Source: Basidiobolus meristosporus CBS 931.73 (taxonomy: Eukaryota > Fungi > Basidiobolomycota). From it: DNA of 64,000 bases. Both the position numbers and the translations under genes were made by a program. A model generated the notes under the pieces. The model was not told where the DNA came from. It saw nothing but the letters and a program-made list of their open reading frames with translations, and ran no database searches. Numbering within the stretch: the first letter of the stretch is position 1; each line of letters opens with the position of its first letter. Below are positions 9,280 to 15,226 of this stretch, one piece after another. The stretch covers positions 1-64,000 of the forward strand of contig MCFE01000442.1 of NCBI GenBank assembly GCA_002104905.1, written 5' to 3'.

Positions 9280-9885
9280 CTACGCACCAAAGTTGAATTT
9301 CTTCATGTTCCTCCTGTCTGGTTCGGTATGGTGTTTGTATTCCACTTCGACTTTATCTTGGGCGCTTTTCAAGCTGGCCATGACGGACTTGAGGAAATCC
9401 TCCAGCTCGACCTCTAATGCGTGTACTTCGCCTTGGCTCTGATTTTTTTGTTTGGCATCGTTGGCAATCCTGACCTTTGCCTCTTTTGCCAACCCCTCGA
9501 TGTTTCTGGTTGTGGCGTTGGCAAGTCCCTGCAGTTTCTTCAGACCAATCTTGTCTTTCATTTGGCTAAGGGTGAATGATGCAACTTCCTTGTAGGATTG
9601 TAAAATAGCGACCATCTTCGATTTGATGTCAGCCACGGTGCTAAGGGCAGCCCCTTGCAAATGATCGACTGTACCGCTTGATAACTTGGTCAATAAATCC
9701 TCTGGTTTGGTTCGATCCAGTTTTACCATTAAACTGGCCAAGCCCTTTAGAAAATAATCGGCTGGCCCATTATCGTCTCGTTTGCCTAGGACATATGGTG
9801 GCTCGTTTCGCACCATAGGCGAGCATGTGGCTACACCCAAGATGCCGATGCTGAGAATCCCTGATTTCATCAATTTCATTGTCAC
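9280..9885 (-). CDS. Intronless ~200 aa predicted secreted helical protein, family not recognised
   Basis: 201-codon ORF with hydrophobic N-terminus (KSGILSIGILGVATCS), short pro-segment ending LGKR, then Lys/Leu/Ala-rich amphipathic helices. Confidence 0.65.
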   Translation of the reverse strand: MTMKLMKSGILSIGILGVATCSPMVRNEPPYVLGKRDDNGPADYFLKGLASLMVKLDRTKPEDLLTKLSSGTVDHLQGAALSTVADIKSKMVAILQSYKEVASFTLSQMKDKIGLKKLQGLANATTRNIEGLAKEAKVRIANDAKQKNQSQGEVHALEVELEDFLKSVMASLKSAQDKVEVEYKHHTEPDRRNMKKFNFGA

Positions 9886-10430: not shown

Positions 10431-13400
10431 TCATTCACCATGAACTGAGGCTTTTCTCGACGCGTTACGTCCTTGGAAATGGGTCCCAAACTCTCGAATC
10501 AATCTTCGTCGGTTGTGGGAATTCCATATCCAGTCAAATAATATCTTTGCAGTCCAGCGTTCCTCTGGGTTAACTGCCAGACATCCTAGCAGAAGTTCTC
10601 TACATTTCATACCCTTGATTGATCTGCATATTTCCTTGTGCATTCTTTCTTCGTTTCCAACTATTTCTCGCAGCCCACGGATATCCTCATCAAAAACCCC
10701 CGGCCAAGGGTTCTGTTGAGACAACGTCCGCCAAATCAGAATTCCTAGCGAGTAGACATCTTCGGCAAGGGGGTCGACAGGGTAGGGAAGCACGTCGTGG
10801 TCCTGCTTATGCTTGGGTAGAGTACAAATGGATCTTTTATGAACGTGGTTAGCGCAGCATGCTAGGGGTCATGGGTAGAATAAAGGCCTACCTATATCTC
10901 TTGTAGCCGTGATCAGGCGCAGTGTAGATTTTTGGTAGCAGTTTCAGCTCCTCCAGGCCGTATTTCCGCGTGCTCCATTTGGAAACATCTTCCGCTCTAA
11001 CAAACAAAGCTCTCCCAAAATCAATGATCACTGCTTTGGGTCTAAGGCTGTTGTCTTTCAGCAATGACCCAGGATTCACATTGACCATAACGTTGATCTC
11101 CGAAAGATCTCGATGGGCAATTCCATTCTCGTGCATTACCTTCACTGCAACGATCATGTCTCTTATGAGCTTGTATTTTTGTTGAGGTGTAACCTTATGT
11201 CTAGTATGTAGGTAGTCTTTTAAGGTTTGCTGGCATCTGCATGAAGCACGTCAGGAAAGTTCAAACTGCCAGCATGGGTTAAATGAGGAGCTCGTACCTG
11301 AGCATGGTTAACCCACCAAGCTGGTTGGATTCATCCTCCAAGATAGACATGATCTCGCCAATTCGCTTAGTGCCTTTGAGCTTGCTGGATGGTTGTTCAG
11401 CTGGTGTGTGTTTAATTCAAGGTGGCTGCTGGAGATTTACTTACGTTAGACATAGGACCTCCATCAAGCATGCTTGGAACGATGCTTCATTTATCTCCTT
11501 GTAAAGCTGAATCACCACATCTGGATTGTGGATATGCCCATGCACAGCCTTGAAGAATCCATTCACCGCGTCAGAAGACAACACGCTTCTGTAATTAGAA
11601 TCTAGTTTTTCCACCTTAACTCCATGGTTATAGGCGACTTCAAATATGTGGTAAGTAAGCCTGATCACTGAAGAGAGCAACGACATTTGATTTACATATT
11701 TTAAAATGCTGATAAATTTCCGCAGCTGATCGAGGTTGCGAGATGTCCAGGTTGTATTCTTTAGAAGCGAGCGTAAAGGAGTAAGCGGCACGCCTTGATT
11801 CCACATTATATTCATTCGACACTTACTGTATGTGGGCCTTTCGTCCGCTTCTTCAATCGGTCTGTCCAGTTCCGTGCTAAATTTGGCTGATGCGATAGGG
11901 ATAACTCTTTTATCGTTGTTGCTTCTGTCAACGTTTTCGGTGCGGCCTGTCGCATGAGGGTTTTTGGGTGATGTTTCTTGATTCACAAGGTCGGTTGTCT
12001 CGATCTGTACCATGTTTTCATCATCAGGTCGTGAGTCAGGTCGTGAACTTTCCCCAGTCTCGTGGGACATCGAGTCTAGGACAAGAGCTTCTTCCAGGTT
12101 CACCAGCGGATTGTCGCTACTCAAAAACAAAACGGGCGTGATGGATCTTGAGAGCTTAACCGGGACAATTTCTTCGTCAAGCCCCGTGTCGCTCACTATA
12201 GGCGAGGTCAATCGAACCAGAGGGCTATTCATTTCCCTCTTGGGTATTGGTGATTCTGGGGTTGGAGTTGAAGTCCCAGGCGAGTTAACAACAACTGGTG
12301 GTGTGTGTTGGGCATCCACCATGTTTTCTTCCGAATTCGACATCTCCTTCGCCTTCTCCGATACGGATTGTTGAGATGAAGCTTCAGTTTGTTGTTCAGC
12401 TGTTATATTCGATGGAGGGGTTGAGCTGGGAAGCGTACTCTCAATGTCCTCGCTTGTCTCAGATGTATGATGCGGATCGGGATTGTCAAGCTGTGCTGGT
12501 GCAAAACGTAACAGCTCTTTAGCAAAATATTCTCGGAGTATATCGGATTTAAGGGGAAATGGCTTGAATGGCTTGTTCAACTGCGTTCGAGTGGAGTTTG
12601 TAATTTCTATTTCAAGCTTGACAATCTTGATTACCAGTACCTTTATCCAGGTTTTGGTAGAATCCAAGCTCTGCAAAACCTCCACTTCATCAAGGTCATG
12701 CCTTTCCCCAAAAGGCTTACAAACGAAGCAATCCCCCTTCAGTATAACCGATTTCTTATTTCCTGGGATCTTTTCGTACTGAATGCTTGACATCACGAGT
12801 AACAGTCCATTGGGATCATCTCTGCACGTTTCAAGTATCGTTCGATTCTGAGCGACAAAGAGTCGCACTATCTGGGGTCTGAAGGGATAGTTGGGTAGTT
12901 CCAGCAAGGGGGAATGGATGGACTCGGTAATTTCTTTAGCCAACAGCCCCATGTGGCTTTTTTCGGCCTCCTCTTGGTTGAGTACTTTTACAGCGTAGAG
13001 ATTCTCAACGTTACCGAAAATCAATGTTTCCCAGTGTTGTTGGAATTCCATTTGCAGCTCATCGATGGAGGTCCTTGTATTCATTTCGCTGATTATATCT
13101 GCCAATGCCTGTGTATAATCCTTAGCCACGAAGAATACCACATCCGTATCGTCGTACGTTTCTTGCACAATTGAGGCTACTCTGGCTAGTTCATCAGTAA
13201 ACTCCTCCAAGCTTGTATACTTCCCTTCCCATAGCCCTCTCTCTATCCTCGCCAGGTTGAGGGCGGGCTCACGTGGGGTGTACAGCCTGCTGGTCCCGCG
13301 AGAAGAAATGAAAGCGCGACTACAGGATAAAGGAAATAATCGATCTAAAATGTGTGCGGCCTGAAAGAATACATCCCCCATAGCAAGGGCCGAACTAAGA

Positions 13401-15226
13401 ATTTTTCGGTGGATGCTAATAAAGTTGTCTTCACTTGAAGGTAATAGCACCCTGTTTGGTTGCGATATTGTTGGAGACACGGGTACTTCTCTAATGGGAA
13501 CATCATCCTGCGGTGACTTTGTTTGAAGGGTTGGTTGTGTGGGCTGGATCGAATCAGTGGTCAAAATCGGTTGCAAGGAAGTTTCATCGCTCATTTCTGC
13601 TCCCTGAGATATTGGCGAAGCAACAGGTGAGTCCATCAAGGGTGATGGGCTTGGGATGTTATCGGGAAATGTATTCAGGAATTGTGAAGCTTGCTCACTT
13701 CCAGAAGTCTCGATGGGAGGCTTTGAGGTGTTCTGCAGCCCTGTAGCTTTGCGAGCTGATTTGTCTTTTGTTTTGACTGAAAATACATCTCTTTGATCTT
13801 GCGAATTTTGCAGGCCATAATTCAATGAAGTGGTTGCGGTGGGCCTCTTGAAACTGCTAATAACCGGACCAAGAGAAGATGCTCTCTCGTGAGTTGTATC
13901 GGTATGAGGTGGTTGTTTGACCAGTGGATATCGTGACACCGCTTTCGAAGGAGTGGCTGAATGGGATGGAGTAAGAGGGTCTTCATGGGAGATATCCATT
14001 TGGACTCTTGGACTTTCGTAGCATCTCGGACTCATCTCTGTCGGTTCAAAAAAAGTTGTGAGCTCGTATGGCGTAGAAGTTGGTCTTTGCGCTATATTCT
14101 TTAAAGCGCTTCTAGAAACAGCTCCTGAAGAAACGGATTCAATATATTGACAAAGGTACAGATTGCAAAGAGAGCTTACCCTGATTGAATAAACCCTTGC
14201 CTGTCGTGTTTTCGGATAAGGTGCCGGAGACGCTGGGGCGCTCAACTCCCTTTCCTTTACGAGCATTCAACGGATTACTGTTACTTGGTAAGCTAGTAGT
14301 AGGTCGCGGAGGAGTGTACAAGTTGTTTGGAGATGGAGCTAGTTCTTTCTTGGCTGTCGGGTTTAGTGACCGTTTGTCTAGCCGCAATTTAGGTATATGT
14401 GTTTTGGGCTGGTTGAGGTTTGTCGCTGACACTAAAAATCCCCGGGATATATATGGTTATTAAATTACGCTACTGGTATGTAAGAATGGATGAGTTTGTG
14501 CGTACCATTTTTCGAGCATTCATAAGAATCCCCACTTCCTTCTTTGCCCTTTTTGCTCAGACGCGACTTTTTTAGTGGAGGACTCGAGGTCTCATTCACC
14601 TCGGGGGATGTAGCTTCTTCGAGAGGTAGATGGGATTTGTCCTTTCTTGAATTGGAAGGGGGTGTTTCTTGCAAAAGAGATTTTTTTTCCGGCGAAATGT
14701 ACACCGGCAGATTCAACTCGTGTGAGTGGGTGATTTTCGTCAAATTTTGCAACACGCTATGCTGGCTCAGGGAGGGGCTAAAATTGGAAAGCTTAGCTCC
14801 TTGAATGTAGGGGTTGACTTTTTGTGTGGTGCCATAATCCATAACAAAGGAGCGTTGACGCTTTGAAGAAAAAGTTGGTGAAGGTTTCGGGTGACCTTTG
14901 AACAGACTGCGGGCGTCTTGGCTGATGTTTCTGGCGTAATGCTAACTTGTTGCGATCTGAAAGTAGAAAATCCAAATGAGAACGCGAGGATTCCTCGAGT
15001 AAAACTAACGTCCAAAGCAACAAGGTGAAAATACTTACGGGTTCCCCAAGTCCGACACCCCATTATGTACGTGTATAGATCGTTTTGCGGGTGTGATTGT
15101 CTGGTTGTGGGGTGAGTGTATAAATTCCTTTGGGGACTTTTTAGAATAAATTGGGGATTTGAGTTTTGACACGTACAAAACGGACAAGTCGGAGGGCTTT
15201 TGCGCCCTGTTGGTTTCCTCCATCAT
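10431..15226 (-). CDS. Large multi-exon protein: low-complexity N-terminus, bromodomain-like region, C-terminal atypical protein kinase domain; 5' exons uncertain
   Basis: Spliced C-terminus: AVNGFFKAVHG...VVIQLYK...LMEVLCLTKL...GLTMLRCQQTLKDYL...MHENGIAHRDLSEINVMV...AVIIDFGRA...EDVYSLGILIW...CLAVNPEERWTA. ORF 11441-14266 provides most of the body; upstream exons have GT-AG signals but their phases were not fully resolved. Confidence 0.8.

Follow-up and report, generated by a model that had tools for sequence, protein, structure and literature searches.

The 64,000-nucleotide stretch of Basidiobolus meristosporus CBS 931.73 analyzed here (contig MCFE01000442.1, positions 1 to 64,000; hereafter the window) carries on its minus strand a gene at 10431..15226 for a large protein with a C-terminal protein kinase domain. 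The kinase has no lysine at the beta-3 position used by canonical kinases, and has a lysine in the glycine loop instead. A reading of the sequence alone had proposed that this is an independent relocation of the catalytic lysine, in the style of WNK kinases, within an uncharacterized fungal kinase family. That proposal is supported by conservation among homologues, by hhalign comparison with canonical kinases, by a structural model, and by the lack of any special kinship to WNK in sequence or fold. The protein is probably an active atypical kinase that uses the loop lysine, and on the sequence evidence the arrangement is most likely a third, independent relocation of this lysine to strand beta-2, after those of WNK and POMK.

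Under the mechanism proposed here, the invariant loop lysine would reach down to the phosphates of ATP and pair with the glutamate of helix alpha-C, as it does in WNK1 and POMK. A lysine or arginine directly after the DFG motif may substitute for the missing lysine of the catalytic loop. The enzyme, which forms the C-terminal domain of a large protein of apparently nuclear type, would be an active atypical Ser/Thr kinase whose relocation arose separately from that of WNK.

Conservation and placement of the loop lysine

When the minus strand was reread, the loop lysine was found as AAG at 11551-11549 in VNGFFKAVH and the beta-3 glutamine as CAG at 11509-11507 in DVVIQLYK, both exactly as the sequence-only reading had given them. 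Conservation was assessed in a set of 66 sequences from Basidiobolus, Glomeromycotina, Mortierellomycotina and Mucoromycotina, which were chosen by the C-lobe motifs HRDxSxxN and PDHG, with a few rows chosen by the loop motif itself; the N-lobe columns cover 53-54 of these sequences. The loop lysine is kept in 52 of the 53 homologues that have the column, and the glutamine is kept in 51 of 53, the exceptions being a valine in an Absidia protein and an alanine in a distant protein from the Logan collection. The alpha-C glutamate is retained in 53/54 sequences, and an arginine three residues before it in 50/53. Because the lysine and the glutamine are conserved to this degree, the pattern is not a product of chance, and the homologues bear out a pairing that had first been noticed in a single sequence.

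The distant Logan protein (967 amino acids, on the 3133-nucleotide contig L005 from SRR29032805) keeps ASGFFK and HRDLSEVN. Since it has the loop lysine but an alanine at the glutamine position, the glutamine appears to be less essential than the lysine. No poly(A) was found in the Logan contigs with family members (L005 and L006), and for that reason they were not taken as transcripts.

The equivalence of these residues to those of canonical kinases was examined by aligning the family profile with hhalign to 35 canonical kinases drawn from the weaker matches (probability 99.9). The family consensus AeGxFKxVy was placed over GxGgfGxVy, which puts the lysine at the third glycine of the GxGxxG loop. 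Likewise, VVQ was placed over vAvK, with the glutamine at the VAIK lysine and the preceding valine at the alanine that contacts adenine. The family glutamate fell over the alpha-C glutamate, and the hairpin between beta-2 and beta-3 was three residues shorter than usual. This agrees with the earlier placement of the lysine at the third-glycine position (G55 of PKA) and of the glutamine at the beta-3 position.

Searches were run exon by exon, and fold prediction was performed on the natural orthologue from Basidiobolus ranarum (KAK9702223.1). An AlphaFold2 model of the B. ranarum kinase domain built with the family alignment has a predicted local distance difference test (pLDDT) score of 93 and a predicted template modeling score (pTM) of 0.91. 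In this model beta-1 spans residues 39-45, the turn is formed by G46-F47-F48, and beta-2 begins at K49, the loop lysine, so that the model places this lysine at the first residue of beta-2. Strand beta-3 spans 60-65 and includes Q63, while helix alpha-C spans 70-85 and includes E79. We infer that the lysine most likely contacts ATP.

Two other assignments were tried and rejected. The lysine of LYK, three residues past the glutamine, was considered as the true beta-3 lysine; this position holds lysine in 29, arginine in 15 and glutamine in 9 of 53 sequences and lies 13 residues before the alpha-C glutamate. A register given by HMMER against ULK1, in which the family FK falls on the later VFKG, loses the matches of the loop glycine, phenylalanine and valine. 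The hhalign register was preferred because the second glycine, the phenylalanine and the valine of the loop all match and the strands of the model agree with it.

The domain as a whole is a protein kinase. Pfam assigned the third kinase exon (E 3e-9; Pkinase, 36.9 bits) and the fourth (E 2e-6) to a protein kinase domain, and the N-lobe exon of the window gave no Pfam match. All 31 members examined match Pkinase (PF00069), with the B. ranarum orthologue scoring 70 bits against a cut-off of 31.7 bits. VIA comparison of the orthologue model returned Z scores of 23-26 to many kinases, as expected of the bilobal kinase fold, and the model has a helix and an extra strand ahead of beta-1. The solved kinases nearest to the family are ULK1, TTK and kinases of the CAMK type; among the best 60 of 781 PDB matches of the family profile, the top ones include ULK1 and TTK as well as CDPK, MARK and MSK1 (its C-terminal domain).

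Catalytic motifs and competing explanations

The HRDLSEIN catalytic loop (11115-11092) and an intact DFG motif followed by arginine (11022-11011) are both present, as had been described. Within the 66-sequence set the HRD aspartate is kept in 65 and the DFG phenylalanine in 63, and the two Mg-binding residues, the catalytic asparagine and the DFG aspartate, are each kept in all 66. The position of the catalytic-loop lysine (HRD+2) is serine in 66/66, usually followed by glutamate. The residue directly after DFG is lysine in 62/66 and arginine in 3/66, including the window (11011-11013, minus strand). This basic residue may take over the role of the catalytic-loop lysine, which would be a second relocation of charge in the same domain.

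Between DFG and helix alpha-F the domain exceeds the usual length by about 25 residues. The sequence-only reading had stated that there is no APE motif, and APE itself is indeed absent; however, the usual site of APE and helix alpha-EF is taken by an invariant PDHG(Y) (10917-10903 in the window), after which the chain makes a short helical turn, though hhalign leaves this segment unaligned. PDHG(Y) fits the part of an APE equivalent that would pair with the conserved arginine of alpha-H/alpha-I, a residue present in all 60 sequences that cover the column.

A paralogue in B. ranarum (KAK9727673.1, P0002) has HRN in place of HRD and DYG in place of DFG, with the loop lysine and the glutamine both kept. 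It is a possible pseudokinase offshoot inside the family.

One alternative is that the whole family consists of pseudokinases that bind nucleotide or a partner without phosphotransfer and serve as a scaffold or switch on the reader domains encoded upstream, with the loop lysine needed for nucleotide binding or loop conformation. Several features favor this explanation, most of which also count against catalysis by the loop lysine. The beta-3 and catalytic-loop lysines of canonical kinases are both missing, which is a greater loss than in WNK, and the second glycine is the only one of the three loop glycines that is left. Pfam kinase models omit the glycine-loop region in every member tested, their matches starting at profile positions 26-62. 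Additionally, the paralogue KAK9727673.1 tolerates HRN and DYG and still keeps the loop lysine, so this lysine is perhaps kept for a non-catalytic reason. However, the equivalents of Asp166, Asn171 and Asp184 and the alpha-C glutamate are invariant or nearly so in four deeply separated fungal lineages, whereas pseudokinases usually erode several of these residues. It should also be noted that WNK1 and POMK were formerly labeled pseudokinases on equal grounds, yet both are active (PMC10211241). Taken together, a family of pseudokinases is considered unlikely, though it deserves serious attention.

It was also considered that the kinase is active but draws the charge that anchors the phosphates from another basic residue, either the lysine or arginine after DFG or the alpha-C arginine, with the loop lysine left for contact with a substrate or regulator, for example. 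Both of these basic residues are unusual and conserved (65/66 and 50/53, respectively). However, the loop lysine is at least as conserved as either of them and lies exactly at the WNK1/POMK position, and the residue that follows DFG in canonical kinases is turned toward the phospho-acceptor and not the alpha and beta phosphates, all of which makes this explanation improbable. The remaining explanation is that these proteins are true, if divergent, WNK orthologues in zygomycete fungi and simply inherited the relocation. The GxFKxV loop is shaped like the WNK motif quoted in the sequence-only reading, and one paper states that Phycomyces has three WNK-like sequences (PMC10301571). However, no WNK was found among the best 60 of the 781 PDB matches to the family profile or among the top 50 structural neighbors, whether by Foldseek or by exhaustive VIA-align, both of which listed generic kinases. 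A profile of the N-lobe alone found no kinase in PDB, its sole match being ribosomal protein S8, by chance. The family also has DFG and not DLG and an HRDLSExN catalytic loop. Pfam scans of 8 full-length members returned only Bromodomain and kinase models, with no OSR1_C, CCT or PF2-like domain, and the kinase itself is C-terminal. Descent from a true WNK is thus very improbable. The remark that the rest of the protein does not look like a WNK was well founded, as no special kinship appears by sequence or fold and both searches and motifs set the family apart. An active kinase using a loop lysine of independent origin is the explanation preferred here.

The complete gene, its upstream domains and the fungal family

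The kinase gene extends far beyond the stretch described in the sequence-only reading. A tblastn search of the window with the full-length B. ranarum orthologue (KAK9702223.1, P0151; 1452 amino acids) outlines a gene of about 4.8 kb on the minus strand (10431..15226), as are all features of the window given in this section. The peptide that begins with an ATG at 15226 matches the N-terminus of the orthologue, and the N-terminal exons are placed only roughly, at about 14100-15226. Comparison with the orthologue also revealed two further introns, one of 68 nucleotides (11759..11826, GTAAGT..AG) and one of 58 nucleotides (11638..11695). These flank a 63-nucleotide exon (11696..11758), recognized by its translation and by BLASTP to the orthologue, which codes for a portion of the helix ahead of the N-lobe (residues 10-23 in the model).

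The kinase region itself consists of four coding segments and three introns of 58-61 nucleotides that have GT..AG ends and branch sites resembling CTAAC or CTGAC. The three introns stand as they had been predicted, but the exon that opens the kinase starts at 11637 and not at 11640. This exon (11445..11637) runs from beta-1 to alpha-C and carries the loop lysine, the beta-3 glutamine and the alpha-C glutamate (GAG 11461-11459). After an intron of 60 nucleotides (11385..11444, GTAAGT..CTGAAC..AG), the second exon (11298..11384) encodes the beta-4/beta-5 region. An intron of 61 nucleotides (11237..11297) separates it from exon 3 (10892..11236), which was identified by Pfam and homologue searches and holds the catalytic loop, DFG with its arginine, and PDHGY. 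The last intron is 58 nucleotides long (10834..10891, GTAGGC..GCTAAC..AG), and exon 4 (10431..10833) encodes alpha-F to alpha-I and the tail up to a TGA stop at 10433-10431. Nucleotide similarity to the B. ranarum gene stops at the borders of all kinase exons; exons 2 and 3 are equal in length between the two species, and the kinase exons are 79-89% identical to the orthologue. The ratio of nonsynonymous to synonymous substitution rates (dN/dS) against B. ranarum is 0.04-0.05 per exon, with the synonymous rate saturated, a ratio that shows strong purifying selection on the gene.

The public protein from this strain, ORX89464.1 (P0001; 249 amino acids, annotated as "kinase-like protein, partial"), corresponds to exon 3 plus exon 4 and confirms the junction between them. 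It belongs to the same 90% cluster as the B. ranarum orthologue. By comparison with that orthologue, the public B. meristosporus model is evidently a fragment, covering only the last two exons of a far larger gene, and the annotation of 249 amino acids is corrected here, the B. ranarum orthologue being 1,452 amino acids long. A 941-amino-acid open reading frame (ORF; 14266-11441) was considered as a single exon and rejected, because according to the B. ranarum protein it spans the introns at 11826-11759 and 11695-11638. It stays open through both by chance, since their combined length (68 + 58 = 126 nucleotides) preserves the frame. Word-index searches for homologues with residues 290-941 and 795-941 of this ORF gave no match at all; they missed even the protein of the window itself, whose deposited model of 249 amino acids falls outside the length range searched, and the search with residues 290-941 was swamped by low-complexity words.

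Just downstream of the kinase gene lies a 201-amino-acid ORF (9280-9885) whose N-terminus is hydrophobic and whose body is rich in Lys and Glu and looks helical. In B. ranarum (L007, 398-1070), a gene for a Hikeshi-like protein lies upstream of the orthologue.

In the full protein the bromodomain comes first, followed by a conserved middle domain and then, after a disordered linker, by the C-terminal kinase. The bromodomain at 13067..13381 is degenerate. It aligns with bromodomains that are significant by Pfam (PF00439) in members from Ambispora, Mortierella, Cunninghamella and Pilobolus (E 1e-12 to 6e-18); the copy in the window matches the MLL1 bromodomain weakly, and a Pfam scan of that copy gave no match. 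The position of the acetyl-lysine-binding asparagine is tyrosine in the three Basidiobolus sequences and histidine in the aligned Glomeromycotina and Mucorales members. Among the aligned bromodomains (including P0003, P0007, P0010, P0023 and P0028), the asparagine is kept only in the two Mortierellomycotina members. Because this position varies, the reader function of the bromodomain may differ between lineages.

The middle domain (12467..13021) is about 140 amino acids long and was delimited by phmmer against family proteins and by the family alignment, in which the motifs R.Y..KNR, KP.GERHD and LD.P.AW stand out. It has no Pfam match. Its AlphaFold2 model has a pLDDT of 87.5, and the top VIA neighbors of the model are all PUA-like domains of the YTH, EVE and ASCH types, with Z of 6.2-7.4 over 117-137 residues, which is under the tool's caution line of 8. 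Foldseek matches were weak (E about 0.01, template modeling score 0.3-0.4). Domains of these types are readers of modified bases. The resemblance of the middle domain to YTH and EVE domains is weak and is offered as a lead only.

Homologues were collected by an exhaustive HMMER search with exon 3, which gave 186 matches at E<=1e-3 and 51 at E<=1e-10. Besides Basidiobolus, named members come from the Glomeromycotina (Ambispora, Entrophospora, Rhizophagus), the Mortierellomycotina (Mortierella, Actinomortierella, Linnemannia) and the Mucoromycotina (Cunninghamella, Pilobolus, Parasitella, Rhizopus, Absidia, Gongronella, Mucor, Benjaminiella). No member from Dikarya or chytrids was among those named in this search. 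A scan of a prokaryotic contig collection with exon 3 yielded four bacterial kinases and nothing else, and ESM Atlas features pointed to generic kinases only. A maximum-likelihood tree of 31 kinase domains recovered the four taxonomic groups with 99-100% support and resolved several paralogous lines in the Mucorales. Since the tree follows taxonomy, the family is old and vertically inherited, and the lysine/glutamine arrangement is ancient and stable.

The protein belongs to an undescribed kinase family whose members have been seen only in early-diverging ("zygomycete") fungi. Database names of its members are generic or wrong, for example "Receptor-interacting serine/threonine-protein kinase 1". 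A full-text literature search found no paper that treats the family, reports a fusion of a bromodomain with a eukaryotic protein kinase (ePK) in such fungi, or describes lysine relocation in a fungal kinase. A more far-reaching proposal, which is put forward only tentatively, is that these proteins form a class of reader-coupled kinases of early-diverging fungi, in which the bromodomain and the YTH/EVE-like domain would target an ePK with two relocated lysines, one moved from beta-3 to the glycine loop and the other from the catalytic loop to the position after DFG. Such a class would represent a third independent origin of the beta-2 lysine, would be directed by chromatin or RNA marks, and would have no counterpart in Dikarya or animals.

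Relocation of the lysine to beta-2 is the textbook case of a "pseudokinase" sequence that hides an active enzyme. If the explanation preferred here is correct, the family adds a third case, independent and deeply conserved, and would show that the beta-2 solution is evolutionarily accessible. It would also provide a natural experiment on the changes that accompany the relocation, namely the beta-3 glutamine, the shorter beta-2/beta-3 hairpin, the loss of the catalytic-loop lysine and the basic residue after DFG. The bromodomain and the second reader-like domain point to chromatin- or RNA-linked signaling that would be found only in Mucoromycota, Glomeromycotina, Mortierellomycotina and Basidiobolus. 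Arbuscular mycorrhizal fungi and the agents of mucormycosis are among these groups, and humans have no counterpart of the family.

Comparison with known kinases

The closest parallel is WNK. Like this family, WNK kinases have no beta-3 lysine; where beta-2 starts, at the third glycine of the loop, they carry a lysine placed to do its work (Lys233 of WNK1), and they retain the alpha-C glutamate, the HRD aspartate, the asparagine and the aspartate of the DFG position. The two differ at beta-3, where WNK has cysteine and the family has glutamine. The catalytic loop of WNK is of the HRDLKCDN type, with a lysine, whereas that of the family is HRDLSExN, without one. The family also has a long activation segment with PDHGY, a bromodomain and a middle domain in place of the autoinhibitory and CCT-like domains of WNK, and is known only from early-diverging fungi. 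A further difference is DLG in WNK against DFG in the family, the DLG motif being the chloride sensor of WNK (PMC5346417).

A beta-2 lysine is catalytic in WNK1 and POMK (PMC10211241, PMC5346417), and WNK and POMK are the only cases of beta-2 relocation cited in the review consulted. POMK (SGK196) resembles the family in having its catalytic lysine on beta-2 and in being active despite a sequence like that of a pseudokinase (PMC10211241). However, POMK is a sugar kinase of the secretory pathway without canonical HRD and DFG motifs, whereas the family keeps both motifs and looks nuclear or cytosolic.

The FunK1 kinases (Pkinase_fungal, PF17667) are also fungal and have serine in place of the catalytic-loop lysine (HRD[IL]S..N). 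The likeness to FunK1 that the sequence-only reading had pointed out holds for the catalytic loop but not for the rest of the domain; the score against the general Pkinase model is 70 bits. The Pkinase_fungal match covers about 55 of 387 profile positions (291-345), around the catalytic loop only, and is found at E<=0.01 in 16/31 members. The excised kinase domain of the B. ranarum orthologue reaches 24.5 bits against a cut-off of 24.1, and the whole protein falls below it at 22.2 bits. FunK1 is an expansion of the Dikarya.

TAF1 and BRD4 combine an acetyl-lysine reader and a reported kinase function in one polypeptide. To our knowledge neither of them contains a canonical ePK domain, whereas the family described here has a bona fide ePK fold fused to a bromodomain.

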